A stretch of DNA of 64,000 nt, from contig OZ287701.1 in assembly GCA_965649825.1 (NCBI GenBank), positions 1,381,539 through 1,445,538 on the forward strand, read 5' to 3'. Positions 5,410 to 54,080 of the stretch are shown piece by piece. Under the pieces are notes generated by a model. That model searched no databases. It saw only the letters and a program-made list of their open reading frames with translations, and had not been told where the DNA came from. A program made the position numbers and the translations under genes. This DNA comes from Penicillus capitatus (lineage: Eukaryota > Plantae > Chlorophyta). Numbering within the stretch: the first letter of the stretch is position 1; each line of letters opens with the position of its first letter.

Positions 5410-5850
5410 CTATTTGATCTCAATGCGGCGCACGCCGCTGTCTTCCTTCACTTCTTTGCGCGGAATCGACACAGAGAGGACACCGCGATCGAGCGACGCT
5501 TCAATGCGATCAGGATCGGCGTCGCGTGGGAGTTGCAACGAACGGGAGAATGTCAACTGCGATCTTTCGTATCGCGTGGAGCCTCCTTCTTCGCCTCGCT
5601 TCTCTTCTTTTCTCTCTCCCGACACGGTCATGCGATTGCCACGCACTTCGATATTGATATCGCCCTTGTCCATCCCGGGAGCGTCGGCTCGGACGACATA
5701 CGCCTCAGGCTTCTCGATAAGATCCATGGGACAGGACCCGACCGTTGACGGAAGGAAAAAGTCACCTGGCATTCGACGCTGGAAACAGCGATCCACTGCT
5801 TCCTCCATTTCGTCAAAAATCGATCTTCCAAAGTAGGGACGCAAAGACAT
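5410..5850 (-). CDS. Small heat shock protein (HSP20/alpha-crystallin domain), intronless
   Basis: PMDLIEKPEAYVVRADAPGMDKGDINIEV...VSGERKEE...RYERSQLTFSRSLQLP...ASLDRGVLSVSIPR; ATG at 5850. Confidence 0.93.
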   Translation of the reverse strand: MSLRPYFGRSIFDEMEEAVDRCFQRRMPGDFFLPSTVGSCPMDLIEKPEAYVVRADAPGMDKGDINIEVRGNRMTVSGERKEEKRGEEGGSTRYERSQLTFSRSLQLPRDADPDRIEASLDRGVLSVSIPRKEVKEDSGVRRIEIK

Positions 5851-5896
5851 GTTGCTGGTCTGACGAATCGTGAACGGTTGAACGAGGAATGCCGAC

Positions 5897-5935
5897 TTAT
5901 ATACGACTGTCGAGCATTCAGGAACTCTCTCGAAT
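5897..5935 (-). promoter_or_regulatory. Heat shock element plus TATA box upstream of HSP20
   Basis: 5916-5935 reads aTTCa-gGAAc-tCTCt-cGAAt: four alternating nGAAn units with one mismatch. TATATAA lies on the minus strand at 5897-5903, between the HSE and the HSP20 ATG. Confidence 0.8.
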
Positions 5936-6137
5936 CTTGGCGCATGTTCATGATGACGTGGATGTGACCGTCGCGTCGAAAAGACGTTGCATCCATGAAA
6001 CGCGCCGCTCCGTCGCCACTGACGTGGCACCGAACAGCGTCATTCGATCGTCGAGAACTTCGATAACATAAGACGCCACAATTAACATTGTCTGAAGATA
6101 ATAACGAACGGGTGTTGCACAAGGGCGAGGGTACACC

Positions 6138-9100
6138 ATGTCCGACGCTATGCTTTCTGCCAGTACACAGTCCGTCAAACACGTCGGTCAGCACAACAGC
6201 AGCCATTGCACCAAGCGTGATATTTATATGAGTGAGATGCTGTGTAGAAGCTGCGGTGCATCGCATGCGTTCTCGATTGAAACGGCGTCCAAGTTTGGTC
6301 TCCGGTTATCTCCGTCCAGAATCGTTTGCCTGGAAAAAATTTATCTCCCTCGATGGAGAAAACAGTGCCTACACAACGGTGCTGCTCATCTGCATGAATC
6401 TTGCCGTGCGTTCTTTCCATTCGCTGTCTCGTATATGACGAGGACGATGTGTTGGTGGCATCTGCAGTTGCTGATTTGGTTCTTCGAAAGAGGGATCCTC
6501 GAAGGACGCGATGAATTTCTGGACAATGTCGATTCTGGCATTGCAGCTAAACGCCTCTTTCGATCGCTCATCCTGATCATCTGTGCCATCTTTAATGGCT
6601 TCTTGGCGTTTCTTCTGTTGGCAATGAATCTACGAGACGTTCGTTTGATGCCGTCCACCGTGGAAACGCGTTGGCTGTTCGCTTCAGGACTGGGATCCCT
6701 CGTTGCCAATGGAAGCGCTGCATACATCATCTACAGCGCTCAGAAAGCGTACGAGTGGCGTATCGATGATGGAAGCTACGAGAAGCCGTTTCCACATTAT
6801 ATGATTATCTCTGTCTTCGCCCTCTTTATGTTTGTCATGAACACAATGTACATAAGGATCGTGTATCTGCCGTTCATCCGATGCAGACCAACGGGATGGA
6901 AGCTTGTCCGAAGAAATCTGTCGCTGATACTGGAGCTAGGCAGACGAGAACGCGGCGAAACCTCCTTTCGCGAAAATGTGAGAATCGCTAGGAGTTCGTC
7001 TCCGTTGGCGAATAGTGTGACCTCAGGTGATGCATCATTTGTTACGGTTGCTACACCGAGTGGCTGGTGTCTACAACTTCTTCGTCTTCTACTACTTCGA
7101 ATTCTATGAAATCATCATCATGCAATGCTACAAGATATACCAGAGGCAGAGATCTTGCGTTCGGATGAAGGCCGCTTCGTGTGTCATCTCTGAAGTGGCA
7201 CTCAGTCCGGCGCGTTTGATACGATGGTCGCCCATCATTCAAATCCCTCTCTATCTCAGTCGCAAAACGAAGACGATGATGGAGGTGAGGAGGAGGCAGA
7301 GAGTGGCACCGAAAACATGAGATGGCGGCGGGTGTGCTTTAGAGAATGTCAGGGATCTTTCAACCATTGCAGGCATTTGCTGATGCCGCACGGATAGCAG
7401 GGGGACATGTCGATGCCCCATGGTATCAACGCGTCTTTCGAGGAGTCCTACAAGTCCTGGATCGTTTCGTCTTCAGCTTCAATCACATCAAACCGGAGGT
7501 CCATCGCTGACTGATGTGACTGCGATCGATCCTTGATGCGTGTTTGATGTGACAGGTTCAGCGGACGGCCGATGATCTATGGGATAGCATCAAAGAGGAC
7601 GAGACCTATTCGCATTCATCCTGGCTTAAGGCTGCTTCCGTCACCGCCGCCATCTTGCTGGTGTACTGGGGCGTCTTCATGGCTAACGAATTTCGAGGCT
7701 ATATGGACGATGTCTATCACCCGACGCGAAACTGCATGATCCACAATCCTGGCGTCTCGAATTTCTTTCTTCGCTTCATCGGATTCTCGCCTTCTGATGA
7801 TACAGTGCCGAAAGAGGAACAGACACAAAATGTCTGCACACTGACTCTGTCCTCACTCGAAATGGACCCGGCCGCTCCGCCAGTCGATCTAACAGATCCA
7901 GCTTTGATCCAGAATGCAACGGCTGCAGCGCCGACCCTTGTGGATAGTGCGACATCGATGGCCGCGAATACGTCGCTTGCTGAGAATGTGACATCGATAA
8001 ATCCGCAGCCAGTGACCGAAACGGGTCAGCAATTCATCCAGGATGCAACATCTGACCCGTCCCAGATCCAGACAGCAATAACAAATTCAAGTGCTGCTCA
8101 AGAAGTGACAGATCGGCTGCCTACCAATCTCACTGACCTGCCAGCCACACCCTTTACGCCGACTGGAGATAACAGAAAACTGCTTCAAGGTGCAGCTGCA
8201 GATCCAGCCCTTGATTTTCTTTCGCCTGCCGTCGAAGCCGTTGCACCAGAATTTGATGCCGCCACGTTAGCGCGGTTTTCTCAATCGCTTGCCACCCGTG
8301 TGTCCCAAAATCGAACAGTAGATCGGCTGTATAACTGTGACAACCGACGTCGGGACAGCGATGTCTGTGTGTCACTCTCGGCCGTCAACATGGCGGAAGA
8401 GATGCTGTCCAACACCACGAACAGCAGTTGGCAGCCAAGCGATGAGTTCTTCAATTCCTTCACGGGAGACATGGTCTATCTCTTCGATGTGTACATGCGG
8501 AATCTGGAGTGGTCTGTCTGGGTCGGATTCGCTGTTGGATTGCTCTTTGGCATCTGGACGTTACTTTCCGTGATGGGCCAGTACAAGCGTCTCAGTCTCG
8601 CCATTCGCTCAGGACTGTTCACAGATTTTGACATCGAACGGCAGTGCGAGCTGTCCAGGACGAAGAGCCAGAAGATGGGACTGCTCAAACGCGTGGACAG
8701 TGTGATCACGACGCATTCCTTTGCCAAAGTGATTGTGCATTACCCTATGAGCACATCGATTTTCTTCTCGGGCATGCTCATCAGCACCGCCATCTTGCAG
8801 TTGGTCGTATTTGGTGGTCTCGTGGCGAGCATCTTCTCACTCATTGCTGCCATGACCGATGATCATGTCTTTGAATTCGTCAAACCGGCGCTCTGGACAT
8901 TGCTGGCCTTCTGCATTACCTGGATGGTTAATGGACCCATTGCCACGTTTGTTTTGGGCGAAGGGCTGCTCGTCTCAAAGTTTCATGTGATCCACGAGAT
9001 CGCGTTTTTCATGTTTCTCTTGGTTTTTACCTCCGTCCATCTGGTGGTGGGCATCTTCTTGGCCTTCTTCAGAATGCTGTGGGTTCTCCTGACGTCGCTC

Positions 9101-9490
9101 GTCACCATTAACCGACTCGACAAAAACCTCTTCAGCATGTACAAGGAGCGCGACATTGGACACAAATCCTTCATGGCTCTGGTTCTGATGCAGCACGTTT
9201 TTCACGTGAATCGGTCTGGAAATGTTGAGGAGATGAGTCGATGGGCTGATGTGCTAAATCAACTGGAGAGCAGTCGTCTTCGCCGGACAGAAGGCAAATC
9301 CACAATCCTGCGACATCAGAGCGAACCGTTTGAGCTTCTCGATGATCAACTCGGTGAAATTCGCGAAGAACGAGATTCGGAGATCATGGAACAGGGACAG
9401 AGCACCTTTGCCCAAAATAGGCAGACGCGACATGAGCAGACAGCTGTCCAAATGCCATCGATGGAAATGCAGCCAAGTCAAAGGGATTAA
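6138..9490 (+). CDS. STRA6/RBP-receptor-like multi-pass membrane protein with large S/T-rich loop, multi-exon
   Basis: Exons 6138-7600 splice in frame into ORF 7655..9490 (...KPE|VQRTADDLWDSIKEDETYSHSSWLKAASVTAAILLVYWG). Many hydrophobic segments, so membrane topology is well supported. C-terminal blocks resemble STRA6/STRA6-like proteins as I recall them; the family call is unsearched. Confidence 0.7.
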
Positions 9491-9808: not shown

Positions 9809-11475
9809 ATGCTCTTGCGTTTCGTCCGTGCCCTGCGGCCAGCCATTTCGTCGGAGAGCACTCTCAAGATCCGTCTGCGCCACCACTGTCGTATGGCATC
9901 GACCATTCCAAGTGCTCAGAGTGACGAAGTGCGTCCTTGTAGATGCTCCCCTCAGTGATCAACCACTGCCACAGGTCCTCGTGGAGAAGAGAGGCTCTCT
10001 CGTCATCTCCACCCTCAACAGGCATGCCACCCACGATCGATGAGCAAAGAGACGGACGGTCGTGCGATGCATTTAGGCCGCGTGCACTCAATGCTCTGAA
10101 CACCCCGATGGTGTGCACGACGATTGATGCCGTCTTCTTTGACGATCTCTTTCTTCAGATCATTCGACTGTTGGAGCATCTCAAGGAGTGGAATGCCAAT
10201 GAGGGTGACGTCGGAGCGGTGGTTGTCCAAGGGGCAGGAGGCAAAGTGCGTGTTCTCTAATCTATTGTGTCATGACGGATGCGTGTGTGATTGTGACATG
10301 TGTCAGGCGTTCTGTGCTGGAGGAGATGTCAAGCATGTTGTTCAGAGCGAGAGGGTCGAGGAACGGATCGAGTTCTTCAACCATGAGTACCGCATGAACT
10401 ACGCTGTGGCCAAATTCCGCAAGCCGTTGATCTGCCTCATGGATGGAATCGTGATGGGCGGCGGATGCGGCATTGCCATGCACGCGTCTTTCAGAATCGC
10501 CACCGAGAGGTAGGTGTTTGGGACACAGCAACGCCTACCTGTCACATCATTTCTGTCGCAGAACGGTCTGTGCCATGCCAGAATGCGTCATCGGTTTTGT
10601 ACCGGACATCGGATCTTCCTATTTTCTCAACAGATTGCCGGACACCATCGGAGTATATATGGCGCTAACTGGGAAGAGAATCCGAGGTCAAGATTCGGAT
10701 CTTCATCTGTTATGCCTTCTTCAGTATGGAAGCAGGTCTGGAACTCAAAGCTGTGGGATTGGCAACGCACTATATCGCATCGGACCAGATGCCGACCGTC
10801 CTGCAGCATCTGACGGACATGGGAACGACAGTGCGCGATCACAGTGCCGTGAATACAATGCTGAACAAACTAGAAGTGCGCCGCCGCCTCTGTCCCGTGC
10901 CTTTTCGTGATACGCTGGTCGGCGATGTCGTTTCAGGTGCATGGTCACTTAAAAGAGATGCCGTCTCTCTTCGGCCCCCTTTCGCGCATGGGATCCATGT
11001 TTAATCCTTTTGAGTTTTCGCTCGAAGCGCTGATGGCGAGATTGGCATCGGCAGACGACGAGCCTTCTAAAGAGGCGCTCGAAAACATAAACAGGTCTGT
11101 TCTTTTTCCTCGAGATGGACGACGGTATGCGTGCCTTGTACAGTGGCGCACCTCTGTCTGTGTCTCTGGCATATGAGCTGATGAAACGCATGGCAGGACA
11201 ACCGCTGAAGACGTGTTTGCAAACAGAGATGACATTGGCTGCCAATCTGTCAAGAGGCGAGGGCGAGTTCTTTGAAGGAGTGCGTGCGTTGCTCATCGAC
11301 AAAGACAAGACGCCGAAATGGAAGTACCATAGATCACAGGTCCGTCCATAACGACAAGACATCTGCACAGACTAACAACGAGGCTGCCTCTTAGATCACT
11401 CCAGAACTGATCGATCGATTCTTTCAGTCAAGAGAAGGGGATCCTTTACTCTTTGACCCCATCGCAAAACTTTAG
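9809..11475 (+). CDS. HIBCH: 3-hydroxyisobutyryl-CoA hydrolase (crotonase fold; CHY1/HIBCH-like)
   Basis: TLNRPRALNALN, AFCAGGDV, MDGIVMGGGCG, AMPECVIGFVPDIGSSYFLNRL, EFFEGVRALLIDKDKTPKW; last exon ends DPIAKL-TAG (11473-11475). Confidence 0.92.
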
Positions 11476-11617: not shown

Positions 11618-12723
11618 ATGTTACTTCAAAACAAACTGATCGTGTGCTCCCTCACAGCGAACAACCGAACGGTAACACAAATCGGCGCATGTATTCCACG
11701 TCCCCCCTTCGACGCGGTGCTAATTCTCAACCGTCGATGCCAACGGCTTCATTCACGCCTGTTTTCTTTGCAGCGTCCGTCCGAGGTATCAACATCGAGA
11801 CGGTCCATCCTGACAGCCCTCCCGATCATCGCCTTGCCATCTCTGTGGTCATTTGGACAGCCATCTGTCTCGCATGCGGACACAAAGAAGCAGCTATCGA
11901 GTGAATTCATTGCTGCTTTCAACAAGGCCTTGAGCCAAACGGACGATCCCGCTAAGGCAGACCGGTCCTGGACGGATGTGATCCAACTCGATCCGACAAA
12001 CTCTTATGCCTGGAGCAATCGTGGGACCATCCGTCTACAGCAAGTTTGTCCGTCCTCTTCCTCGATATATATACGGACTAGGCTACAGGGGGAGTGGAAA
12101 GGGGCCAAAGAAGATTTGCTCAAGGCTTACGAACTCGAGACAGCAGACGGCAAAGCGAGTGGCATTTTGCTGAACAATCTAGGCAATGTGTATGGCGCAT
12201 TGGATGACTGGGAGACGGCGATAGAGAAGTTCAGAGCGGCATCACTGGAGCCAGCGATGACGCCCATTGCTTTGGGAAATCTCGCCTTTGCTCTCTTCCA
12301 GGCATCGAAAACCTATTGCCCTTCGGATGCCATCCTCTTTTTGTGCAGTTGGAGAGGACAGACGAGGCAATTCGTCAAGCCAAGGCACTTCTGAGAAAGG
12401 ATCCAAACTTCCTCGACATGCGAGCGGCGCTCACAGGATTTCTGTGGTCGATTGGCGAGGAGGGAGAGGCAGAATCTCAATGGTCGCAGCTGCAGGCGGC
12501 AAACGATGGACTTGGAGGTATGTCTACGCCCCACGATGTATCAAGCGCATTGCTGAATGGCGCAGGCGAGATCTATAAGAAGGAGGTAGCGATAGAGAGA
12601 GTGCAGGGAAGGTGGCCGCCTCGTGCTGTCGCTGCCTTGGACGCTTTCCTGAAGGTATCGCGTCAAGGGGAATCTCTGGACTATGATCAAACCAAGAAGA
12701 CATTTTCATTCACCTTGTCTTAA
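11618..12723 (+). CDS. Plastid-type TPR protein (cyanobacterial-like, RWPP motif)
   Basis: Transit-like N-terminus with RR plus hydrophobic stretch and A-x-A-like site; TPR motifs (AWSNRGTIRLQQ, LLNNLGNVYGAL, LLRKDPNFLDMRAAL); C-terminal GRWPPRAVAALDAFL. Confidence 0.8.
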
Positions 12724-29215: not shown

Positions 29216-30973
29216 ATGATGCGTGGAGAATCCTCGGCGCAAACAGCAGCGCCACTACTCCCAATGGCTGGTGGCGATCCTAGAAAGTTGCTAGAAGGAA
29301 ACGGTCGTTACGTCAGAGTGGGAAGTGTTAACTGTTGTGGCTGGCTGTGGCGTGCCGTTTTCCGTAACTGGGGTCGCACGGTGCGCAGCACACCAACGGA
29401 GACGTTTTTTCCAGTCACGAAAGTCGGAGTGCAGAATATCGTTCGCTGGGCCAAAGCAAATGGAAAAAGGGTAAGGGCTGCTGGATACCGACACACATGG
29501 AGTAGTTTTTACGTCGATGACGGCCAAGTGTTTATTTCCATGCTGCCACCCAAGGTCGCCGAGAAAATACCGACGCCTCCCTATCCGTATGATCCAGACA
29601 GAGAACTCGGCCGCATTGAAGAGTTGTCGACCGAAAGAGTCGGAAACAAAACTTACCGTCTCATCAAAGTGGGAACCGCCACGACAAATGAGCAACTCCG
29701 TGTGTGGCTGCTGAAAGAAAAGAATTGGACCATTCCACTAAATGTCATTATGTCTGCCATCACCCTAGGAGGAAGCAATGCACCGATATGTCATGGATCT
29801 GGCTGGGAAACCAAGACCCTCAGCGATTTGGTAACGGAGCTTGAGTATGTGAATGCAAATGGGGATCTGGTGACGGTCAATGATAAGACGTTACTCAGGA
29901 GTGCTGCTGGCTGTTTTGGATTACTGGGCATCGTGGTGTCGCTAACGTTACGCCTGGATACCATGTCTTGCGCAAGAATGCAGCCACGCGCCAGACCAGT
30001 CGTTTTGTCCATCCCTCCGCCTCGTGGATACTGGGTACCGCGTAACGTCGATCTGCGTGGAGTCACGCCAGCCCAGAAGGAAGAAGCATTTCGAGCTATG
30101 GTCGAGAGTTTTGAGAAAAAGTACTACAATGAGTATTTTTGGTTTCCTCTTCAACGTGAATGCTGGATCAACTGTTGGGAGAATGATGGCAACGTGAACA
30201 ATGCCGAGATTTATCCGACGAATTGCGAAAGCATGATGGAAGCATTCTTCCAAGCCGTTCTCAATTTTGCCAACATAAAGATCTTCCGATGGTTGCTGCC
30301 AGTCATATCGACTTCAATCATTGGCTGGGGTGCCATGAAGAACCTTACTCAGAGACAAGACTACGTTGTGTGGCTTCCCGATGCTCTGCACTTCGTCAGA
30401 GGCATTCAGAATCTGCGCTGCTTAGATATGGAATGGGAGATACCGATACCCAGCTTACCAGATGATGAGACCAAGCCCGATTGGTCTATTGTACAAAAGT
30501 GCTGGTGGGATGTCATCACATCCGTGTACTCCAGATACAACAGCTCCAGTAAAGACATGCCATTGCGTCTCGCTCTTGAGCTGCGTGTCACGGGTGATTC
30601 TGACATCATCATGGCTCCTCAACACGGAAACAAACTCGGAACCTTAGCCATCGAGATTCTATCATTCAGCACTGTCGGAAGTGAAGTCTGGTTGAGCTTC
30701 ATGCAGGAGATCACGGATAAATGGAGCAAGTATACAGATGCAAAAGGCATACCCTTGAAGATTCGTCCGCATTGGGCTAAGGAATGGGAAAACCTGACTG
30801 TCAGGGGAGAACCTATCGTGGATTACTTGAAATCTGTGTATGCCGATCAGATTAAGATCTTCAAGCAAGATCTCGAAGACATTGGAAGTAAACAGGGCGT
30901 TTCATTGGAACAGACGAGGTCGATGTTTTCGAACAAACTCCTCGATGAGCTGATCTTCGATACAGCTGCTTAG
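29216..30973 (+). CDS. FAD-linked oxidoreductase (PCMH FAD-binding + ALO-type C-terminal domain), intronless
   Basis: 585-aa ORF; RVRAAGYRHTWS FAD-binding His motif, ITLGGSNAPICHGSG, LSDLVTELEYVNANG, AAGCFGLLGIVVSLTL, LALELRVTG, terminal RPHWAKEW. Confidence 0.88.
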   Translation: MMRGESSAQTAAPLLPMAGGDPRKLLEGNGRYVRVGSVNCCGWLWRAVFRNWGRTVRSTPTETFFPVTKVGVQNIVRWAKANGKRVRAAGYRHTWSSFYVDDGQVFISMLPPKVAEKIPTPPYPYDPDRELGRIEELSTERVGNKTYRLIKVGTATTNEQLRVWLLKEKNWTIPLNVIMSAITLGGSNAPICHGSGWETKTLSDLVTELEYVNANGDLVTVNDKTLLRSAAGCFGLLGIVVSLTLRLDTMSCARMQPRARPVVLSIPPPRGYWVPRNVDLRGVTPAQKEEAFRAMVESFEKKYYNEYFWFPLQRECWINCWENDGNVNNAEIYPTNCESMMEAFFQAVLNFANIKIFRWLLPVISTSIIGWGAMKNLTQRQDYVVWLPDALHFVRGIQNLRCLDMEWEIPIPSLPDDETKPDWSIVQKCWWDVITSVYSRYNSSSKDMPLRLALELRVTGDSDIIMAPQHGNKLGTLAIEILSFSTVGSEVWLSFMQEITDKWSKYTDAKGIPLKIRPHWAKEWENLTVRGEPIVDYLKSVYADQIKIFKQDLEDIGSKQGVSLEQTRSMFSNKLLDELIFDTAA

Positions 30974-31532: not shown

Positions 31533-32882
31533 CTAAAAAGATCCGTTTGGGACGACTGTCGCCAAATCGGACTTCACTGCCACATTGGTTGCACTTACAT
31601 TTGGTTCTTCTGTCACCGGGACCTGGAAATCCAGCTCGACTCCCTTTTCGAAGACCAGGCAGTGTGTCGAACCGCCGAAATGGAACATTCCAAGTTCATC
31701 GCCCTTTTTAACCTCTTGACCTTCCACGACTGTAATCTCGCAACTCGATACTTCTCCCATTCCCACCAAAACAATTGCAATTAAACCAACTGCAGGATTG
31801 TCTGCACGAATAAAAATAATCCCCCGTGTTGCCACGGATGTCATAAATGGCTGAAATTCATTTGGTGCTGCTGGATGCGGATTTTCGCTGTGAATGCTCT
31901 CCGATGGACTTTGAAGATAGAAAGCTCCATCAACGATAGAGGTTTTCTCAATTGCCCCGTCCACTGGACTGTGCCAGCAGTGGTAAGTCAGAGCACTCAA
32001 AAATGCTTGATATACTGTACCGCCAGCAAATTGAACAGCAAGGGGATCGTTGTTAAGCATGGCCTCCAGTGAATACGGTTGGCCCTTTAGCGTAATATCA
32101 GCAGAGAGCATAACACCTTTCTTGTACTGCAGAGGAGCCGATTCACAAACATTGACGATGTCTGCACCGCCGACTGGCCGCTGGCCTTCTCTGAACCTCC
32201 TCGTAAAGAAGGCATCCCAACTTTTGAAACCCAGATACTTTTCATCAGTCACATCTGGCACTTCGAAGATTTCTTCAAATGATAATCTGCGTTTATCAAC
32301 GAACGGCAGTAATGCCACCTCGACCATCTGCTGTTTGACAGGCACACTGAACCATGGGACAGATCGCACAGCACCAGAATCATCGCCTTCGGCAAATACG
32401 TATCTCGATTCCTCCCTGGACAAAAATCCACTCCAATACTGCAAGACATTCTTGAAGCATCGGTTGAACTCAACGTTTGCAAGAGTGTCGTAACCAGACG
32501 GTGTTCTCATGGGCCAGTCAAGCAACGCATTGATTGGAAACCCGACTAGACCGTATGTCTCATCATCTTCTGCATTCACGATGAACTCCGGAGCAATGGT
32601 CATAATAAAGTTCAGCAAATCCAAGAATTCTTTCCACGTTTCGACCGCTGGCGTCGAGGTCGAATCTGCGTCACTGTAGTGCAGGGCTTCGACGAACATG
32701 CCTTGTGTCGAAATGTCCAACAGCGGATTATTGGCGACCATATTGTACAGCTCTCGCACCGGTTTGTGATATTCGGACACTTCGGTGACTGTAACCCTAT
32801 CCTTGAATCCTGAAACCCATTTCTCCAGTAATACATGCTTTTCCAGCCAGTTTCGCTGTCTTCTTTTGGATAGTCGCAACAT
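31533..32882 (-). CDS. Phosphatidylserine decarboxylase-family protein of the PsiD-like type (N-terminal PSDC domain), intronless
   Basis: 449-aa ORF; GLVGFPINALLDWPM, FKSWDAFFTRRFR, NVCESAP, LKGQPYSL, GGTVYQAFLSALTYHCWHSPVDG, VGMGEVSSC, VKKGDELGMFHFGGSTHCLVF with GG|ST pyruvoyl self-cleavage site. Confidence 0.9.
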   Translation of the reverse strand: MLRLSKRRQRNWLEKHVLLEKWVSGFKDRVTVTEVSEYHKPVRELYNMVANNPLLDISTQGMFVEALHYSDADSTSTPAVETWKEFLDLLNFIMTIAPEFIVNAEDDETYGLVGFPINALLDWPMRTPSGYDTLANVEFNRCFKNVLQYWSGFLSREESRYVFAEGDDSGAVRSVPWFSVPVKQQMVEVALLPFVDKRRLSFEEIFEVPDVTDEKYLGFKSWDAFFTRRFREGQRPVGGADIVNVCESAPLQYKKGVMLSADITLKGQPYSLEAMLNNDPLAVQFAGGTVYQAFLSALTYHCWHSPVDGAIEKTSIVDGAFYLQSPSESIHSENPHPAAPNEFQPFMTSVATRGIIFIRADNPAVGLIAIVLVGMGEVSSCEITVVEGQEVKKGDELGMFHFGGSTHCLVFEKGVELDFQVPVTEEPNVSATNVAVKSDLATVVPNGSF

Positions 32883-34934: not shown

Positions 34935-37900
34935 ATGTCACGACGGGCTGCAGATCTCTTCAAGTGCTTCGTCGTCGCACTCTGTCTTGTCGGCGCTCTG
35001 ACGCTGGTGGGAGAAGCTTCACAAGGTGAACATAAAAACCTCGCTCTGCTTGACGCAACGACGCTAAACACGCCAGAGCCCAGACGCGAAAGCGACATGT
35101 TCGATTCCTTGGCGCGTTTACACGAAAACGAGGGAGCTTCTTTTACGTGTTCGGTTTCCAGATGACGCTTGCAGTTTGCTGCAAGCGAAGGACAACGCAG
35201 CCGGTGGCATGGGGACGACGTGGCACGTCGACGATGCGTTCCTCGACAAACATGGTTTGCAAGACGCTATCAACTGTACTGGCGATGGAGATATCATTTT
35301 GATAAGCGCTTCTAGCACCGTGCAATCGCCGAAGCCACTCAACATTACAAAACGACTTACGATTCGACATGGCCAGTCAGACGAGGCAAGGACGGAGACA
35401 GAGGATGACACGAGAACGACGTTGACATGTCCTTCGAACGACAGGCTTTTGCTCATCGAGTGCGTATTCCACGCAAGGCATTACACAGCCAGCGGACTTG
35501 GCGTGTCTAGGAACGCGAACGTCGTCTTGGAAGATATTGTCATCCGAGACTGCTCGTTCTCTGAGGACGATTCGGTCGACAGCATCATCGACGTCAAGTG
35601 CGATGCATCCGCAGACGAAGCCTTTGTCTTCGAGATGTCGAACGTCGACTTCGTCAACAACAGCAATCCCGGTGGTTCTGTTGGATTCTCTGTCCAGAAC
35701 CGGGCTTGCGTCTCAGTATCGATGGACAGCGTCGTATTCAGCGGAAACACGTTTCTCCACGGCTCGTTGTTTGGCCAGAAGAACGAGCTCAGAGACATAG
35801 GCCTATTTGAGAACGCTCAGATCTGGTCAGGATCTGCGAATGGTGGTCAGGAGCCGGCCAACCAAGAAACCGTGAAACATCCAGAGGGTCGGAAGTGAGT
35901 TGAAAAGGTCGCCACTGGCGCTTCTAACGATCTGCTTCGTTTTTCAGGTACATGCAGAATTCACCTCGTTTTGCAGAGAATCCACTTCTCTACTCTCTTT
36001 TTCGTTTCCCCAAGTCATCGACGACGACATTGGTGAATGTCATGGCCGAGAAGAATAAAGGAGAACTGATATCCGTCGAAGAGGCAAGACTGACGATAAA
36101 GGGCAGATCGAGTTTTCGTCGCAACGTTCTCGACGCAGCAGAAGGCGCGACGATCATTGCCTACGAAAGCGCGGTCCACCTCAGTGGCGTTTCGTTCCAA
36201 TCCAACGAGTACAGAACGGGCTCAGCTTTTTCCTTACACCAAGGATCCAATGGGACACTGGACGGTGTGCGCTTCCTCGATAACACGATCGATTCGGGGT
36301 CTTGTGTTTCTGTCACTAATGTCGCAGAATTGCAGATACACCGCATCCGCCTTTGAGGAAAACAAGGTCACAGACGGTCCTGTCATTTTCGTCAATGGAA
36401 AATGCGATGAGCGAGATCCGCTTCTGAATATTTCCAATACCCGTTTTTCGAAAAACAAGGGGGGAGACTTTTCTTTGACCGCGCTGCGCGTTGGTATCCA
36501 ACTTCTGATTGCAGGATTCGACGGCGGACGCGTGTTATTGCATTCGACCACGTTTTCATTGAATGGAATTGGCTGGGATGCAGACCGCATCTCTTTGAGT
36601 TCGATTCGTACTTTTTCCGGCAGCGGGAGTTTTCTCATGACGTCAAGTGAACACGTGGATTTCGCGATGACGGACTGCACTTTTTTTGCTAACCGTGTTA
36701 TGCAGAGTCTGTCTGAGATGTACTTCGACCAATGCAATGGCGACTTCCTTATCTCAAAATCGAGATTCTCGTCGAATATCGGCGTCGGCAAAGGACGCGT
36801 GATTTACTTTCATGACTCCGCGGGAGAACGCAGCAATCTGAGCATCGCCGATTCCGTTTTTCAAAACAATTGCGGCGATTTGAACAATATTCACATTGAC
36901 GGGGCAAAGAGCGTCCGTGTGGAGCGCAGCAATTTCACTGAAAACTGTGCTCATCTTGAAGGCTTTGCTCTGTTTGTCGATAATGCGGATTCCTTTGAAG
37001 CGCATGATTGCCAGATATTGGACAACATTATACTGTTTGATAGGCTCTATGGTCCAATGCTACTTCTTTCTGCCAGAAGTGGCGCGTTTGTGCTTCACTC
37101 AGTCCGCACCGTTGTTCTTAAGGGATCTGTCTTCTACAACAACACTGGATTCGTCGGCAGTGCAGTGCGATATGAGCCACGAAGCGACAAGACCAAGATG
37201 CTGGTCGAATTCTGCACGTTCCAGAAGAACATTGGGGTCAACGGAGTATTCTATCTCCTTCGTGGCAGAGAAGTGAAGGTCCAGAATTCCTCGTTCATTG
37301 AGAACATTTCGTTTGAAAAGACCGGAACCGTGCACTTGGAGGACACCTATGTCATGCGCGTGCAATCTTGCACGTTCCAGAAGAACGAAGCGGAGACGGG
37401 GGGCGGATTGTCAGTCGGTGGTTACCATACCGCGGAGATTTCGAGTTCCGCTTTCCATAGGAACAAAGCCCATTCTTTCGGCGGCGCCGTATGCATAAAC
37501 AATGGTAAATCCAAAAGCCATGGAGCCAAGATAAGGAATACAACTTTCACTGAGAACACGGCATTCATTGGAGGGGCGATGAGCTCGAGCGAAACAAATA
37601 GTTTTCACCTTCACGAATGCTCCTTTGTCAGAAACAGTGCAACTCTATACGGAGGCGCTGTCGCATTACTGAAAATGCCAGGATGGACAACTTATCTTCC
37701 CTGGCACAAACTTGGTTTCTTGTCATTCGCGGAGAACAGCGCAGCCTATGGAGGTTAGAAGTCAGTTCCTGTCTGTCAACAGATGACAACAGCGTCTTGT
37801 TCTTTGCAGGGGCATTGTTCATGGACACTTCAAAAAGAACCGTTAAATCCGACGACAAGAACAATGTTGTGATGCCGAAAGATGCAGTGCGTAACGATCG

Positions 37901-40498
37901 AGCGCAATGGCGCGATGGAAACTTGACGTTCTCAGGAAATCATGCCGAGATAGCCGGCGGTGCAGTTTTTGCTCAATACCGTGATCACATCGAGCGTTTG
38001 AAGCTGAGATGCACTCCGCCTCTGAATGCGTCGTCTGGAGGAGTCGATTCGAAGATCTCTTTCTCACGCACAGCAGCATGCGAAGAAATGAAAGGCAACA
38101 CAGTGAAAGATGGCGGCTATGGACCAGACATCGCCACTCCTTCGACAGGATTCTTTGCCACGATACTCTTCGAAAACGGCAAAAACCATTCTCTGGCTGA
38201 AGGAGACAGCGGTGACTTTGGAGACTGGAAGAGTGGAAAAGAATTGCCCTTGCTGCAGGTCACGATGTACGACTCCTTTGGACAAGGGCTGGCCCGAACA
38301 CGGTCGCATATCGCGGAAGTCGTGACATTCTTGCCAGATCAAGATCCGATTACATCATACGGTTTTCCAGTTACAGCGCTCCTACACTCAGAAGACAAGC
38401 TGTTTCGAAATGATCTGGTATGTAACTTGAGAGACGGAAAGGATATTCTCGTGATGGGATCGCCACTTGTGAAGCCTGGAAAGTATTCTGCGAAGCTGGG
38501 AGCACATGATGTTTCAGATGGAGACATCACATTCACGGTCACCGCTCGCGAGTGTGTGATCAATGAATACCGACGAGACGACAACAAGGAGTGCATCGAG
38601 TGCGATCACAGGCACTACAACTTCAACCCTGTGGATGGAAGTTGTGCAAACTGTCCAGAGAATGCCAACTGCACGGGGATGTATGTACTTCCTGATCCTG
38701 GGAAGTGGAACTCCTTTCCGTGCTCGCATGAGATTCATCGCTGCCTGTATGAAGACGCTTGTCTTGGAATGAACTTAGAGACTTCCCCCGAGGAAGATCT
38801 GCATGTCGACGAAGAGAAGAAAGACACGTGCGACTTCTCAGATGAAGCGATCGAGAAGTATCGAAAGGCCATGTGCGATGATGGCTACGAAGGTGTTCTC
38901 TGTGGGGCTTGCAATGAGAACTACGCCAAGATCGGACTGAGCCGGTGTCGGAAATGCCAAAATCGTTTTCTGATAGTGCTCGGCATCGCGGCCACCATGG
39001 TTCTTCTGACGTATTCTTCCACAGAACAGATCAGCGGAAATCTGGACAACGTCAGATCGAGATGGGTAGGCCGGATGGAACGGCTTCGAACGATGCCGAC
39101 AGAAGCAGCCATCCTCGAGGTAATCGACCGAGCAGAGGCCGATCAGGAACACGTCGAAGTGGCACAGAAAGCGAAGGAGCGGTTTGTTCTTGTGCTTCAG
39201 GTAAGCACCAGTTCTCCTTCTGATTCTCATGGGTCGAGTCTTCGCTGCAGATCATGCTGAATTTCCTGCAGTCGATCTGTGCGGCGATGTCGATACACTT
39301 CGAATGGTCAACGTACATCGTTCAGCTGTTAACGACATGGAGTAAGAGCGAACACGCCCTTGCGAGTTGCTGACGCCTTTGGCTCTGTGCAGATTGGATC
39401 AGTGGCACCGTGTCCGAAGTATCCACGTTCTCGTTCGAGTGCCTGCTTCCTGCTCGTGGGTCGACTCCTGGATCTGTCATACGAACCGCCCTCACAGTGA
39501 TCGTCCCACTCTTTGTCACCGCCATCATCTGTTCTTTCTGGGCAATCAGGACTATCGGCCGACGCATGCCGTGGAAGTTCTTCGTCAAGAGATGCATCCT
39601 GACCGCCGTCTCCGTTCTGTACGTTTCCTATCTCTCTCTGGCCGAGACGGCCATTAACGTCTTCTACTGCATTGATGTCTTCGACGAAGTCACACTTCAT
39701 GGTATCAGCACTTCTCGTTCCTATTGGGTCGCGGACACGGCTGTCAGATGTTATGCTGGTAGCCACAGAGTCCTTGTCTACGTCGTTGCCGTCCCTCTTC
39801 TCGTATTCGTTCTTGCGTATCCACTTGTGTTGGCCGTCGTAATGGTGATCGCGAATAGAAGAGGAAACTTAAGAACCGACTGGATCCAGTCGACGCTCGG
39901 GGTGCTCATGAATGGCTTCAAGACCGAGTTTGCTTTTTGGGACTGCACCATTTTGCTCAGGAAGGCTTTGATTGCGACAGTCATCGTGTTCGCTTACAAA
40001 TTCGGTGTTGCGCTCCAGGGAAATCTGCTGTGTTGTATTTTTGTCTGCTCGATGTATCTGCACTTGGTTTTCCTTCCTTACCAAACAAACGCCGGACCGC
40101 TGAATTTCCTCGAAGGGCTCAGTCTCTTCGTCTGCGGGACGACGGTCATGTCGGGTGTCATTCTCACTGACCCTAACACGACATCGGAAATCGTTAATCT
40201 GTTTTTGGTGCTCTATGTGTTAGCGAGTAACCTGGTTGCCTTCTCGATCTTCGGTTTCCATCTTCTGACCAACAAGTACACTGAAATCAAGTACACTCTT
40301 CTTTGCGAGGGTGTTGACGTGGGCAGCGGCGACGTCGTTGTCGTTCTGAAGACTTATGTTCGACACAAAACAGAGAAAGTGCGAAACTTGAGCCGAAAGA
40401 TCACGGAGAAGATGTCTCCGTCCAGACGCAATATGGCGGCGGAAGCTGGAGGCTCGGAATCGACAAGGAGCTTGCTCCCCTGTGGCAGCACCAACTAG
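34935..40498 (+). CDS. Large membrane protein: signal peptide, PMP-like GGA/FxxN beta-helix, Cys-rich repeats, multi-TM C-terminus; one apparent +1 frameshift near 36345
   Basis: Signal MSRRAADLFKCFVVALCLVGALTL; repeats FQKNEAETGGGL, FHRNKAHSFGGAV, FTENTAFIGGAM; Cys-rich CIECDHRHY...CANCPENANC...CDDGYEGVLCGAC; several TM helices in ORF 39410..40498. All junctions splice in frame except 36345, where no intron fits. Confidence 0.82.
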
Positions 40499-51620: not shown

Positions 51621-54080
51621 ATGTCTCGACGAAAACAAACCAAGCATCCAAATCGAATATTCGAAGAGGTTGAAGCCTCGACGTGTCGGAGAAGTCGACT
51701 GAAACACAAAACAGAATACGGTTCGCCGAATGAAACGCGAAGGGCCCGTAGAGCCAATCATGAAAGCAACACGAATGGGCATGGCAGTGATGCAAGTGTT
51801 CGGAAACGATCAAATCTGTCTGGAAGACTTACTTATAGATCAGGCGCATTTGAGAAGCAAGTGAGACAGATCGAAGCACGTTTCAAAGGGGAACGTCTGC
51901 AGAACGATACTGCAAGAACGACTACCGAGCATACAACGACCCCAAACGGGCCCAAATCTTCACGGCGGTCAATTGTAGGGAATGACAATTCTCATGAAAG
52001 ACCCAAATCTTCTCAGAAAGTGGATAACAGGAATGAAACCTATCCAAACGACAGTCACGAAGTCTTGGTGTTGATTCCGTCTAGAATGCATGAATCAATA
52101 AGCGGAGTCAGCGATTCTGGACCTGACCTGATGGGGAATGAAGTCAGCGATTCTGCATCCGATAACCCGACAGACAGCGGAGTCAACGACTCTGGCCCTG
52201 ACGTGATGGGGAATGGAGTCAGCGATTCTGCATCCGATAACCCGACAGACGGCGGAGTCAACGAGTCTGCATCCGATAACCCGACAGACGGCGGAGTCAG
52301 CGACTCTGCATCCGATAACCTGGCAGACAGCGGAGTCAGCGACTCTGGCCCTGACCTGATGGGGAATGAAGTCAGCGATTCTGCATCCGATAACCCGACA
52401 GACGGCGGAGTCAACGACTCTGGCCCTGACGTGATGGGGAATGGAGTCAGCGATTCTGCATCCGATAACCCGACAGACGGCGGAGTCAGCGATTCTGCAT
52501 CCGATAACCCGACAGACGGCGGAGTCAACGATTCTGCATCCGATAACCCGACAGACGGCGGAGTCAACGATTCTGCATCCGATAACCCGACAGACGGCGG
52601 AGTCAACGAGTCTGCATCCGATAACCCGACAGACGGCGGAGTCAACGATTCTGCATCCGATAACCCGACAGACGGCGGAGTCAACGAGTCTGCATCCGAT
52701 AACCCGACAGACGGCGGAGTCAGCGATTCTGCATCCGATAACTCTTTTGTTAGTATTACAGATCTCGTATCGGCAATGAACGAGTGTAGAAGCCCAGAGA
52801 AATTGGAGTTGTTGATAAAATGGGCATATAATTGGATGGAATATTTCTCTGCAGATAAACTTAATTCCTCCACGAAAAAAGAGCTCGGCGACTATTTTGC
52901 ATTTGCTGGCGTCAAGGCAGATGTTGATCATCCCTCGAAAGATGAATTTTCACTTACGTGGTTCAAAAAGATTGCCAAATATGTGACCACAGGCCAAATC
53001 AAGCAGGAGCCTATGCTCGAAGTTTTTGAACGTGCATTGTACCGAATCGATCATCGAGTGTTCGGTGGCAATCCAGCTTCCCTCATCCCTCTCATTCATT
53101 ATTGGATCCACAAAAAATTGTACGAGGAGAGCACTTGCTGGACAGAGGGAACGCATGCGACACATAGAATTATTCTGCGTTGTGCTCGTTCTGCGATGAT
53201 CGTTGCTGGCAAAGTTGAGCCCAAGTCGTGGGACCCAGTCGACGACAATAGTCCTTATCGGATGCTGCAAAAAGATCTTGAAAAATTAAAGCAGAGAGTG
53301 ATTTTCTACCCGACAGTCTTTGAGATTCAGCTGGTGGCAGAGACTATGAAGCAGCTGGTGATATCAGGATTCCAAACAGATTGGAAATTGTTTCTGCGCA
53401 AAACCCAAGCAGGAACGGCGGCATTGTTATGTGCAGTCAGCGTCGTCAAGAATGCCATCACTCTGAGCATTGATCCCGTCAATCTGAGGACTTGTGCGGA
53501 TTATCTCTCCGAAGCTGTCAGGCCAGTTTCCCAAAAGCCCGAAGACTGGTTCATCAGATATCAATCATTAAACGAAGCATACGTTCAGGTGCTCGAAGAC
53601 CCATCAAACTATGCAGTGTTCTTGGAGGAAATCAAGACAAGCACACAGAAAGAACGGAGATGGTACGGAATTTTCGGAAGTCGGTCTAGAGGCGAAAAGG
53701 CATTGGCGTGTGGGATCGTGGATTTGTTAAGTCAGTTGGCTGTCTACTCTGTTGACGATCAGGTCAGGGATAGCAGTGTAGCCGAACTGCGTCGTATGCA
53801 AGAAGATTGGCTTAAAGATAAAGACATTCTCCACCAAATGAGGCGAAGCTTTCGAGTCATTGCAGAGCAAGTGCGAAACGAGAGCTCCAAAAAAGCGCTT
53901 CCCTGGCCCAAGCAATGCCATCGTTTACATGCGTCGATCGATCCCCCTGACGTGGTCGGATCACAGGGCGTTGACAAAACTGTGGAACGTTGGCGTGATC
54001 GTTTTGCGAAGAACAGCTTCGTTAAGTGGATGGATACGTCCAATTCGCAAAGAACTCGGAATCGTTCACTAAGACAATGA
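51621..54080 (+). CDS. Intronless 819-aa protein: basic N-terminus, Asp/Ser tandem repeat, helical ARM-like C-terminal domain
   Basis: Long uninterrupted ORF with a non-repetitive helical C-terminal half (e.g. KALACGIVDLLSQLAVYSVDDQVRDSSVAELRRMQ); family not securely identified. Confidence 0.7.
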   Translation: MSRRKQTKHPNRIFEEVEASTCRRSRLKHKTEYGSPNETRRARRANHESNTNGHGSDASVRKRSNLSGRLTYRSGAFEKQVRQIEARFKGERLQNDTARTTTEHTTTPNGPKSSRRSIVGNDNSHERPKSSQKVDNRNETYPNDSHEVLVLIPSRMHESISGVSDSGPDLMGNEVSDSASDNPTDSGVNDSGPDVMGNGVSDSASDNPTDGGVNESASDNPTDGGVSDSASDNLADSGVSDSGPDLMGNEVSDSASDNPTDGGVNDSGPDVMGNGVSDSASDNPTDGGVSDSASDNPTDGGVNDSASDNPTDGGVNDSASDNPTDGGVNESASDNPTDGGVNDSASDNPTDGGVNESASDNPTDGGVSDSASDNSFVSITDLVSAMNECRSPEKLELLIKWAYNWMEYFSADKLNSSTKKELGDYFAFAGVKADVDHPSKDEFSLTWFKKIAKYVTTGQIKQEPMLEVFERALYRIDHRVFGGNPASLIPLIHYWIHKKLYEESTCWTEGTHATHRIILRCARSAMIVAGKVEPKSWDPVDDNSPYRMLQKDLEKLKQRVIFYPTVFEIQLVAETMKQLVISGFQTDWKLFLRKTQAGTAALLCAVSVVKNAITLSIDPVNLRTCADYLSEAVRPVSQKPEDWFIRYQSLNEAYVQVLEDPSNYAVFLEEIKTSTQKERRWYGIFGSRSRGEKALACGIVDLLSQLAVYSVDDQVRDSSVAELRRMQEDWLKDKDILHQMRRSFRVIAEQVRNESSKKALPWPKQCHRLHASIDPPDVVGSQGVDKTVERWRDRFAKNSFVKWMDTSNSQRTRNRSLRQ
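52110..52742 (+). repeat. Coding minisatellite of two unit types (39 nt and 36 nt)
   Basis: 12 full plus 1 partial copies of [SN][DE]SASDNPTDGGV and 4 copies of [SN]DSGPD[LV]MGN[EG]V; 12x39+4x36+21 = 633 nt. Confidence 0.95.

Follow-up and report, generated by a model that had tools for sequence, protein, structure and literature searches.

A five-exon gene from an ulvophyte alga encodes a membrane protein with a C-terminal core probably homologous to the vitamin-A receptor STRA6

STRA6 is regarded in the literature as an animal, even a vertebrate, invention (PMC5977736, PMC3184775), STRA6-like proteins being known outside vertebrates from amphioxus and Nematostella (PMC3184775), and we found no description of algal STRA6 relatives in the literature searched. 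The 64,000-nt stretch of DNA analysed here (the window) raises the question of whether a green alga nevertheless encodes such a relative and, if so, which parts of the receptor it shares. Our results are best explained if a siphonous-type ulvophyte, probably from the Bryopsidales, carries here a functional nuclear gene with introns, encoding a C-terminal core homologous to STRA6, a reading that we consider probable.

Positions 6138-9490, the span given in the original prediction, do not form a single open reading frame. Five exons on the + strand (6265-9490) form one gene, separated by four introns of 62, 49, 58 and 57 nt, all GT..AG, and the product of the spliced gene has approximately 999 aa. 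The gene is organized as follows:

6138..6264, + strand: likely 5' leader, its ATG (6138) lying upstream of conserved exon 1 and out of frame with it (comparison with locus L001)
6265..6405, + strand: exon 1, encoding the K/R-rich N-terminus, the WKKFISLDGE box, which is conserved, and the first part of TM1 (P0003 and P0006 in tblastn; dN/dS 0.12)
6468..6977, + strand: exon 2, with the remainder of TM1 and then TM2-TM4 (AlphaFold helices; dN/dS 0.19)
7027..7284, + strand: exon 3, coding for part of a helical, K/R-rich region with a predicted cytosolic location (aa 186-376; AlphaFold)
7343..7498, + strand: exon 4, continuing the cytosolic helical region (AlphaFold)
7556..9490, + strand: exon 5, with TM5, the outer loop, the conserved membrane core and the C-terminal tail, the stop codon ending at 9490

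An in-frame ATG at 6265, preceded by an in-frame stop at 6229-6231, is conserved in the related syntenic locus L001. We rejected position 6138 as start codon: the ATG there is out of frame with exon 1, the leader shows a 1-nt indel with respect to L001, and the L001 counterpart of its ORF ends after 32 codons, which makes an upstream ORF or 5' UTR the probable interpretation. Splice sites are kept in L001, where indels come in multiples of 3 within exons but not within introns, and transfer of the exon boundaries to that locus produced an open frame with a stop a few codons earlier. Values of dN/dS against L001 were 0.05-0.35 across every segment of the gene, with 0.045 for the C-terminal membrane core (8435-9196), 0.18 for a disordered insert and 0.35 for the tail. 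These low values indicate that the gene truly codes for protein, as opposed to being a chance ORF, and the comparison with L001 supports both purifying selection on the gene and the gene model. An annotation artefact or decaying pseudogene, with a chance long ORF fused to unrelated upstream ORFs, is hardly credible. The large ORF (7655-9490) is indeed out of frame with the one upstream of it (6138-7109), and prokaryote-style gene callers fragment the gene (P0001, P0011), but full-length proteins of other algae align collinearly with the spliced model (tblastn), and L001 shows the conserved splice sites, open frame and per-segment constraint just described. No RNA families were found within the window (Rfam).

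The A1 profile retrieved 112 relatives at E<=1e-3 from 1.84 billion proteins searched, with named members in Caulerpa, Bryopsis, Ostreobium (three paralogues), Acetabularia, Ulva and Tetraselmis. As predicted, the setting is green algal, the closest named relative being a protein from Caulerpa lentillifera (52-60% identity). Genomes of Bryopsis, Ostreobium and Caulerpa each contain several paralogues and, judged by these matches, the gene is a member of a multi-paralogue family of Ulvophyceae and Tetraselmis. A motif of the form RLD...DxG[HY] occurs in 70 of 132 algal-family sequences.

An AlphaFold model from a 10-sequence alignment was unusable (pLDDT 44) and was superseded by model m4d41b199f163, from an 80-sequence alignment (pLDDT 72.7, pTM 0.71), which contains nine long hydrophobic helices (4+1+1+3). 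From these helices and the distribution of charges, we infer that the N-terminus is cytosolic and leads into a membrane domain of four helices, after which come ~190 aa of cytosolic helical sequence, TM5 and a 238-aa outer loop that is acidic, putatively N-glycosylated and built from a small disulphide-type folded domain and the lineage-specific disordered insert. The strongly constrained C-terminal core would then comprise a single TM helix, a loop in the cytosol and a group of three hydrophobic helices, and would close with an RLD..LF...D.GH motif and two cytosolic helices. Since K/R-rich segments flank the last three hydrophobic helices on both sides, one of these helices presumably does not span the membrane, which would fit an intramembrane helix. 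The features of the predicted protein are listed below, with STRA6 helix boundaries that we assumed in part from the hhalign mapping and secondary sources:

6364-6881, + strand (aa 34-185): N-terminal four-helix membrane domain (AlphaFold H34-54, H72-102, H110-147, H154-185)
7619..7744, + strand (aa 377-418): TM5 with block 1, YSHSSWLKAASVTAAILL (AlphaFold H377-418, pLDDT >90)
7745..8458, + strand (aa 419-656): acidic outer loop with 8 N-x-S/T sequons (K+R 12 vs D+E 30)
7838..8242, + strand (aa 450-584): disordered, T/S/P/A/Q/N-rich lineage-specific insert, including RKLLQ (pLDDT <50; mostly absent from P0003-P0007; dN/dS 0.18)
8243..8458, + strand (aa 585-656): small folded ecto-domain (pLDDT ~90)
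8324-8365, + strand (aa 612-625): two-cysteine beta-hairpin inside the ecto-domain (AlphaFold strands E612-615 and E620-625)
8459..8608, + strand (aa 657-706): TM6 with block 2, equivalent to STRA6 TM7 (hhalign of A4 vs A5; AlphaFold H657-706)
8747..8854, + strand (aa 753-788): hydrophobic helix with block 3, YPMSTSIFFSGMLISTAILQLVVF, equivalent to STRA6 TM8 (hhalign and AlphaFold; Pfam positions from ~382 in relatives)
8861..8971, + strand (aa 791-827): hydrophobic helix, candidate counterpart of the horizontal intramembrane helix in STRA6 (aligns to zebrafish STRA6 ~438-475)
8996..9109, + strand (aa 836-873): last TM helix and start of block 4, equivalent to STRA6 TM9 (core of every match)
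9113..9163, + strand (aa 875-891): signature motif RLDKNLFSMYKERDIGH, of the form R-L-D-x2-L-F-x(5-7)-D-x-G-[H/Y] (regex/alignment)
9155..9295, + strand (aa 889-909 and aa 912-935, with RWADVLNQL in the second): pair of helices with a predicted cytosolic location (AlphaFold)
9296..9487, + strand: disordered, weakly conserved C-terminal tail (pLDDT <50; dN/dS 0.35)

The S/T/P-rich loop with sequons anticipated in the prediction, at ~220 aa, was recovered as 238 aa between two membrane helices, with S+T+P making up 29% of the loop, 33% of the 135-aa disordered insert and 18% of the whole protein. Its sequons (aa 475, 493, 499, 532, 546, 607, 641 and 644) are all kept in P0002 despite residue changes, and the RLY.C...(9)..C pattern of the ecto-domain is conserved throughout the close family. 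Around 110 aa of the loop are an insertion seen only in the window protein and P0002, which are 87% identical. RKLLQ, singled out earlier, is indeed present at 8174-8188 in the same frame as the blocks, but it belongs to this lineage-specific insert, for which reason we dropped it as a functional motif.

Direct searches with the window protein did not retrieve STRA6. The large exon scored only 6.6 bits (E 3.6) against Pfam RBP_receptor (PF14752), below the gathering cutoff of 25 bits, the model was not listed at E<=10 in a Pfam scan of the spliced 999-aa protein, and the best A1 member reached E 4.1. No STRA6 appeared among PDB sequences in phmmer and profile searches with the exon-5 ORF, the spliced protein, and 7- and 38-sequence profiles; a presenilin match to the last of these (E 0.029) covered a short hydrophobic N-terminal stretch and was treated as noise because of its low score, the lack of other support and the absence of a presenilin signal in Pfam. 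The human STRA6 query used here matched 5SY1, the zebrafish STRA6 structure, at E 2.6e-169, and the zebrafish sequence used was taken from that match. Foldseek, queried with the whole-chain monomer of an all-helical protein, returned 38 PDB matches (best E 2.3) without 5SY1, leaving the STRA6 fold unconfirmed for the window protein, and a close-family profile aligned to STRA6 by hhalign with a probability of only 6%. Both the Pfam and the structural checks proposed with the prediction were thus negative for this protein alone. Together with an identity of only ~15% within the core aligned by hhalign, these results would favour an orphan ulvophyte membrane protein, with hydrophobic helices and a short motif resembling those of STRA6 by chance or convergence.

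Searches through the wider family argue strongly against such a coincidence. In hhalign, the 80-sequence family alignment (A4) matched 12 vertebrate STRA6 (A5) with a probability of 95.3% (E 2.1e-8, 256 columns), pairing window aa 671-947 with 331-622 of the 5SY1 sequence, and still reached 93% (score 67) with -M first, whereas 46 decoy runs with reversed, fully shuffled or locally shuffled templates, the local shuffles keeping the hydrophobic pattern, scored 14-32 with probabilities of 3.9% or less. An HMM from vertebrate STRA6 alone matched ~38 algal sequences, always at positions ~410-553, and 0 of 122 reversed decoys. RBP_receptor was the sole Pfam family recurring among the relatives (profile positions ~305/382-527), and four members exceeded its curated threshold: P0090 (31.9 bits), P0097 (25.8), P0076 from Caulerpa (25.7) and P0118 (44.7). 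The same proteins were matched by the window-subfamily profile (E 1.1e-7, 1.0e-6, 9.7e-10 and 6.9e-4, respectively) over residues overlapping the Pfam match. Used as single query, the bridging sequence P0242 matched 121 of 121 fish STRA6 and no decoys, reversed decoys thus remaining unmatched in both HMM tests, and it also matched close relatives of the window protein (P0003, 26.7 bits; P0006, 21.1; P0001, 16.2). Chance or convergent resemblance is therefore very unlikely, and the alignments provide good support for remote homology between the C-terminal core (aa ~670-910) and the TM7-TM8-intramembrane helix-TM9 core in STRA6/STRA6L, as they do for placing the window protein in the STRA6 superfamily as a divergent algal branch.

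The homology covers only part of what had been proposed. All four blocks lie in one + frame (7607-7660, 8489-8614, 8741-8812 and 9038-9205), and blocks 2-4 are collinear with TM7, TM8 and TM9 plus the RLD motif; block 1 (YSHSSWLK...) is collinear with the start of STRA6 TM6, but scored no better than shuffled controls. Similarly, the STRA6/RBP-receptor-like identity holds for the C-terminal membrane core as a remote homologue, but does not extend to the N-terminal half, the outer loop or the CaMBP2 helix. In the N-terminal half there was no detectable similarity to STRA6, alternative hhalign matches scoring like shuffled controls. The RBP4-binding outer loop of STRA6 has no sequence counterpart in the window protein, where the 238-aa loop is unrelated and largely lineage-specific. 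A regex for the CaMBP2 motif (W..L..L.NNP.L) found it in zebrafish STRA6 and P0242/P0118 only, and in 0 of 130 other sequences of the algal set, window protein included. As far as these alignments reach, the two proteins have in common three to four membrane helices at the C-terminal end and the R-L-D...D-x-G-[H/Y] motif. The RWADVLNQL helix (aa 912-935) is present in the C-terminus of the window protein, with no CaMBP2-like motif after it.

Within the shared core, the window protein presents equivalents of the last four hydrophobic helices of STRA6 (TM7, TM8, the intramembrane helix and TM9) in the same order. After TM9 both contain RLD..L(L/F)...D.G(Y/H), with RLDKNLFSMYKERDIGH in the window protein and RLDISLLNRNVEAFDPGY at the equivalent place in zebrafish STRA6, and then a K.F..L.L helix, in which window aa 889-909 align with STRA6 KAFCGLLLQ. 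The C-terminus of the window protein is, in addition, predicted to be cytosolic and helical, as in STRA6. The collinearity of blocks 2-4 also places the large outer loop directly before the TM7 equivalent, so that, as proposed, it occupies the position of the STRA6 ligand-binding loop, since we take the RBP-binding loop of STRA6 to be located directly before TM7. Outside the core the two proteins differ. The N-terminal domain of STRA6 has five TM helices and its N-terminus outside, whereas that of the window protein is predicted to have four, with the N-terminus inside. The window protein also contains the ~190-aa cytosolic helical insert, and its sequon-bearing 238-aa loop contrasts with a short lid in STRA6. 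Each STRA6 protomer contains nine TM helices and a single intramembrane helix (PMC7154012). The CaMBP2 helix described in the same paper is without counterpart in the window protein.

Divergence of this kind is not restricted to algae, given that STRA6 and STRA6L share only ~20% (PMC8951293). STRA6L/RBPR2 and invertebrate Stra6-like proteins, likewise divergent members, match the same Pfam model (PF14752) as several algal relatives; the animal proteins, however, match most of it, whereas the algal ones match only ~305-527, mostly below the cutoff. The bridging P0242/P0118, a 636-aa protein from transcript-like contigs (SRR29482969 and related runs), resembles the algal proteins in its RVD...D.GY motif and large outer loop with sequons, and its core matches both groups. 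Unlike the window protein, it has a clear CaMBP2-like helix, ARNKWCLAVTLMNNPQL, and lies above the Pfam threshold at 42.5 bits.

What such a core does in an alga is a separate question. If the window protein worked as STRA6 does, it would form a dimer with core helices making up a lipid-exposed cleft, and a small hydrophobic molecule would pass, without energy input, between the bilayer and a partner bound to the outer loop; we regard this mode of action as doubtful, although within reach. RBP4-type recognition and STRA6-style calmodulin clamping are not to be expected, because neither the loop nor the CaMBP2 helix is conserved, and any retinoid, sterol or Ca2+/CaM function is speculative. A true homologue could also do an unrelated job, the core serving only as a membrane or dimerisation scaffold while the putatively glycosylated loop would serve a giant-celled alga in sensing at the cell wall or surface, in adhesion or in signalling for wound plugs, or the protein could be a channel or scramblase. 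This would agree with an outer loop and N-terminal domain unlike those of STRA6, with the presence of more than one paralogue in each of the Bryopsis, Ostreobium and Caulerpa genomes, with an acidic loop that conserves its sequons and evolves fast by insertion, and with the missing CaMBP2 helix. Nevertheless, the strongest constraint (dN/dS 0.045) falls on the very region that forms the ligand cleft and dimer core in STRA6, and Pfam revealed no domains typical of adhesion or wall proteins, so that we consider an unrelated job unlikely, though still worth weighing.

Returning to the STRA6-homologous gene that we favour, a conserved and expanded marine green-algal family with the STRA6 ligand-cleft core would imply that the fold originated before animals or was transferred between lineages. 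A bolder proposal, which we consider improbable, is that the STRA6 superfamily is older than animals and that its green-algal multi-paralogue branch passively exchanges retinal, apocarotenoids or carotenoids across the membrane. If true, it could serve chromophore supply to algal rhodopsins or the carotenoid traffic of siphonous algae, and the animal vitamin-A receptor would descend from an ancient hydrophobic-ligand gate common to eukaryotic lineages. Ulva mutabilis and Tetraselmis offer tractable non-animal members in which to probe the core without RBP4 and the calmodulin clamp, and the family provides genome annotation with a lead on large "uncharacterised" membrane proteins of ulvophytes. 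One survey left out matches confined to RBP_receptor positions >400, treated there as a non-TM region (PMC9333335); in the window protein, these positions map onto hydrophobic helices.

The original prediction placed a STRA6-like gene at 6138-9490, and its four quoted peptide blocks and RKLLQ motif are all present, in a single reading frame of the forward strand. This interval contains more than one ORF, and tblastn with the full-length close relatives P0003 (937 aa) and P0006 (915 aa) matched the window collinearly across three frames. These matches and the reading of the junctions delineated five exons separated by four GT..AG introns (62, 49, 58 and 57 nt), with a spliced product of 999 aa:

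5410-6030, minus strand: HSP20 small heat-shock gene, directly upstream
6265-6405, plus strand: exon 1
6468-6977, plus strand: exon 2
7027-7284, plus strand: exon 3
7343-7498, plus strand: exon 4
7556-9490, plus strand: exon 5
7607-7660, plus strand: block 1
8174-8188, plus strand: RKLLQ
8489-8614, plus strand: block 2
8741-8812, plus strand: block 3
9038-9205, plus strand: block 4
~10000-11400, plus strand: multi-exon ECH_2 gene (enoyl-CoA hydratase/3-hydroxyisobutyryl-CoA hydrolase-like), downstream

A metagenome contig from a related alga (L001), whose protein is 87% identical to that of the window, is syntenic, with HSP20 upstream and ECH_2 downstream as in the window, which supports the five-exon model. 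Exons are 84-89% identical between both loci, with indels of only 3 or 6 nt; introns share 67-81% identity, carry indels of 1 and 2 nt and retain the splice sites. The exon boundaries transferred to L001 leave an open frame, ending a few codons earlier than in the window. The proposed start, ATG 6138, is out of frame with the conserved exon 1, and the equivalent ORF of L001 ends after 32 codons, so this ATG probably opens an upstream ORF and not the coding sequence. The in-frame ATG conserved in both loci, at 6265, is the likely start codon, and the 5' end is provisional. The context of the upstream ATG (6138-6264, and the aligned position of L001) is conserved and opens a short reading frame, which may be regulatory; in the window it runs by chance into the frame of exon 2, generating a misleading 323-aa ORF (6138-7109). 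Against L001, dN/dS was 0.045 over 8435-9196 and 0.11-0.20 in exons 1-4; a disordered insert gave 0.18, the folded portion of the outer loop 0.31 and the C-terminal tail 0.35, indicating a constrained gene, which we take as expressed.

A word-indexed search returned just ten close relatives, and an exhaustive HMM search of 1.84 billion proteins with a seven-sequence profile retrieved 112 at E<=1e-3, including 64 at E<=1e-10. The green-alga setting holds, with named members from Caulerpa lentillifera (P0006 and a second protein, P0076), Bryopsis sp. (P0014, P0027), Ostreobium quekettii (P0017, P0034, P0037), Acetabularia acetabulum, Ulva mutabilis and Tetraselmis, all annotated as hypothetical or uncharacterised, and with several paralogues per genome. 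By these affinities the source is most likely related to Caulerpa, among the siphonous Ulvophyceae.

AlphaFold reached a pLDDT of 44 with a shallow alignment, and of 72.7 (pTM 0.71) with an 80-sequence family alignment (A4). The latter model, hydropathy and charge counts suggest the following layout:

N-terminus: K/R-rich, predicted inside
aa 34-185: four TM helices
aa 186-376: K/R-rich helical region
aa 377-418: TM5, carrying block 1
aa 419-656: acidic loop of 238 aa with eight sequons
aa 657-706: TM6, carrying block 2
between TM6 and the aa 753 helix: K/R-rich loop
aa 753-788 (block 3), 791-827 and 836-873: three consecutive hydrophobic helices
after the aa 836-873 helix: motif RLDKNLFSMYKERDIGH (block 4)
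after this motif: two helices, then a disordered tail

The three hydrophobic helices are flanked by two cytosolic-looking segments and, therefore, one of them should not cross the membrane, which would fit a horizontal intramembrane helix like those of STRA6. Residues 450-584 of the loop are predicted to be disordered and are mostly an insertion present only in the window protein and its 87%-identical relative P0002; RKLLQ lies inside it and can hardly be a meaningful motif. Residues 585-656 are confidently modelled as a small domain whose two-cysteine beta-hairpin is conserved throughout the close family, and P0002 keeps eight of eight loop sequons, even where residues changed.

The window protein alone matched Pfam RBP_receptor (PF14752) with only 6.6 bits (E 3.6-4.1; cutoff 25), failing the proposed profile check and falling outside the family by Pfam's own criterion. 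PDB sequence searches with this protein and the family profiles did not find STRA6; the proposed structural comparison, Foldseek of the pLDDT 72.7 model against the PDB, gave a best E of 2.3, with zebrafish STRA6 (5SY1) not among its 38 matches, and the predicted fold is provisional. The close-family profile aligned to vertebrate STRA6 with 6% probability. Positions 23-109 of a 38-sequence profile, in the N-terminal part, weakly matched presenilin-1 TM1-TM2 in the PDB (E 0.029, 16 bits); this is probably hydrophobic noise, yet it is the sole hint on the N-terminal domain.

The relationship to STRA6 is detectable only through intermediate sequences. RBP_receptor was the sole Pfam family recurring among 38 long relatives (eight at E<=0.01, best 6.5e-6), every time at profile positions about 305/382-527. 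Four proteins exceeded the curated threshold and, on overlapping residues, matched the window-subfamily profile (E for the 1.84-billion-protein library): P0118 (44.7 bits; 6.9e-4), P0090 (31.9 bits; 1.1e-7), P0097 (25.8 bits; 1.0e-6) and Caulerpa P0076 (25.7 bits; 9.7e-10). A published survey dropped hits limited to positions >400, considering that stretch non-TM (PMC9333335), a caveat that does not account for our matches because these positions correspond in them to hydrophobic helices.

From the 5SY1 search alignment we extracted the sequence of zebrafish STRA6; we also collected fish STRA6 and built an alignment of 12 vertebrate sequences. Comparison of A4 with it in hhalign yielded 95.3% probability (E 2.1e-8, 256 columns), pairing window aa 671-947 with residues 331-622 of the extracted zebrafish sequence; with -M first, the core match was aa 792-891 versus 438-537 (93%, score 67). 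Controls (reversed templates or query, full column shuffles in 20 runs and, preserving the hydrophobic segment pattern, local block shuffles in 24) scored 14-32, with probabilities <=3.9%. An HMM made solely from vertebrate STRA6 matched ~38 algal sequences, in each case within positions 410-553; the same sequences reversed, used as decoys, gave no matches. The 636-aa RBP_receptor member P0242 (42.5 bits), as a single phmmer query, matched 121 of 121 fish STRA6 sequences and also, on the side of the window protein and its close relatives, P0003 (26.7 bits), P0006 (21.1), P0002 (17.3) and the gene-caller piece P0001 (16.2), with no decoys matched (200 targets). Directly after the last TM helix, 70 of the 132 sequences in the algal family carry the motif R-L-D-x2-L-F-x(5-7)-D-x-G-[H/Y]; the corresponding stretch of zebrafish STRA6 reads RLDISLLNRNVEAFDPGY. 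The C-terminal core is thus very probably a homologue of the STRA6 core spanning TM7-TM9, and through it the window protein appears as a divergent member of the STRA6 superfamily. P0242/P0118, found in transcript-like contigs of SRR29482969, SRR29483000 and SRR29482972 (loci L003-L005), combines a large algal-style outer loop with sequons and a C-terminus in the style of STRA6, where ARNKWCLAVTLMNNPQL is a CaMBP2-like helix, and connects animal STRA6 with the algal family. The STRA6 family has been described as animal-specific (PMC5977736), with Stra6-like genes known from amphioxus and Nematostella and Stra6 proper only from vertebrates (PMC3184775); literature searches returned no relevant account of STRA6-like proteins in algae or plants.

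Unlike the core, the N-terminal half shows no signal above shuffled controls against STRA6, and block 1, quoted as a STRA6 resemblance, aligns to the start of STRA6 TM6 no better than these. The window protein also differs from STRA6 in its predicted count of N-terminal helices and orientation of the N-terminus, and the outer-loop sequences are unrelated. In the algal set searched, the main calmodulin-binding helix of STRA6, CaMBP2 (sequence from PMC7154012), occurs only in P0242/P0118; the window protein lacks it, as do all of the remaining 130 sequences. Overall, the original idea is partly supported: the resemblance and the green-alga source stand, but the gene start and RKLLQ do not, and the calmodulin link and the functional suggestions are speculative.

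In STRA6, retinol released from RBP4 passes via a cleft into the bilayer with no energy input. This lipophilic cleft surrounds two horizontal intramembrane helices at the core of a dimer of two protomers (PMC7154012, PMC8951293). The algal protein conserves the equivalent part, which is also where its constraint is strongest, making a dimeric passive gate the most economical hypothesis: the protein would dimerize and admit some small hydrophobic ligand, and its glycosylated outer loop would serve in docking or specificity. Such a function is tentative and rather unlikely; the main alternative is that the homologous scaffold would have been turned to surface sensing or to a different transport activity.

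Other features of the window were:

377-1006: Rce1-like CAAX protease
11618-12394: TPR protein
29216-30973, minus strand: FAD_binding_4 + ALO protein (L-galactono/arabinono-1,4-lactone oxidase or dehydrogenase type), an ordinary metabolic gene
31533-32882, minus strand: phosphatidylserine decarboxylase, likewise
36157-40498, plus strand: three successive long ORFs (533, 547 and 362 aa), no Pfam match
51621-54080: 819-aa ORF, no Pfam match
61858-63675: 605-aa ORF, repeats of the right-handed beta-helix (Pfam Beta_helix 2.6e-27) and Chlamydia PMP (Chlam_PMP 1.2e-16) types

The three successive ORFs may be exons of one large gene. Within the 819-aa ORF, a 39-nt (13-aa) unit recurs ~15.6 times in tandem (52101-52742) and is additionally arranged as a 228-nt higher-order repeat; the ORF lies in a region (48-54 kb) of strong AT skew, up to 0.235. 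The 605-aa ORF shows a surface-protein architecture of bacterial look, on an algal contig.
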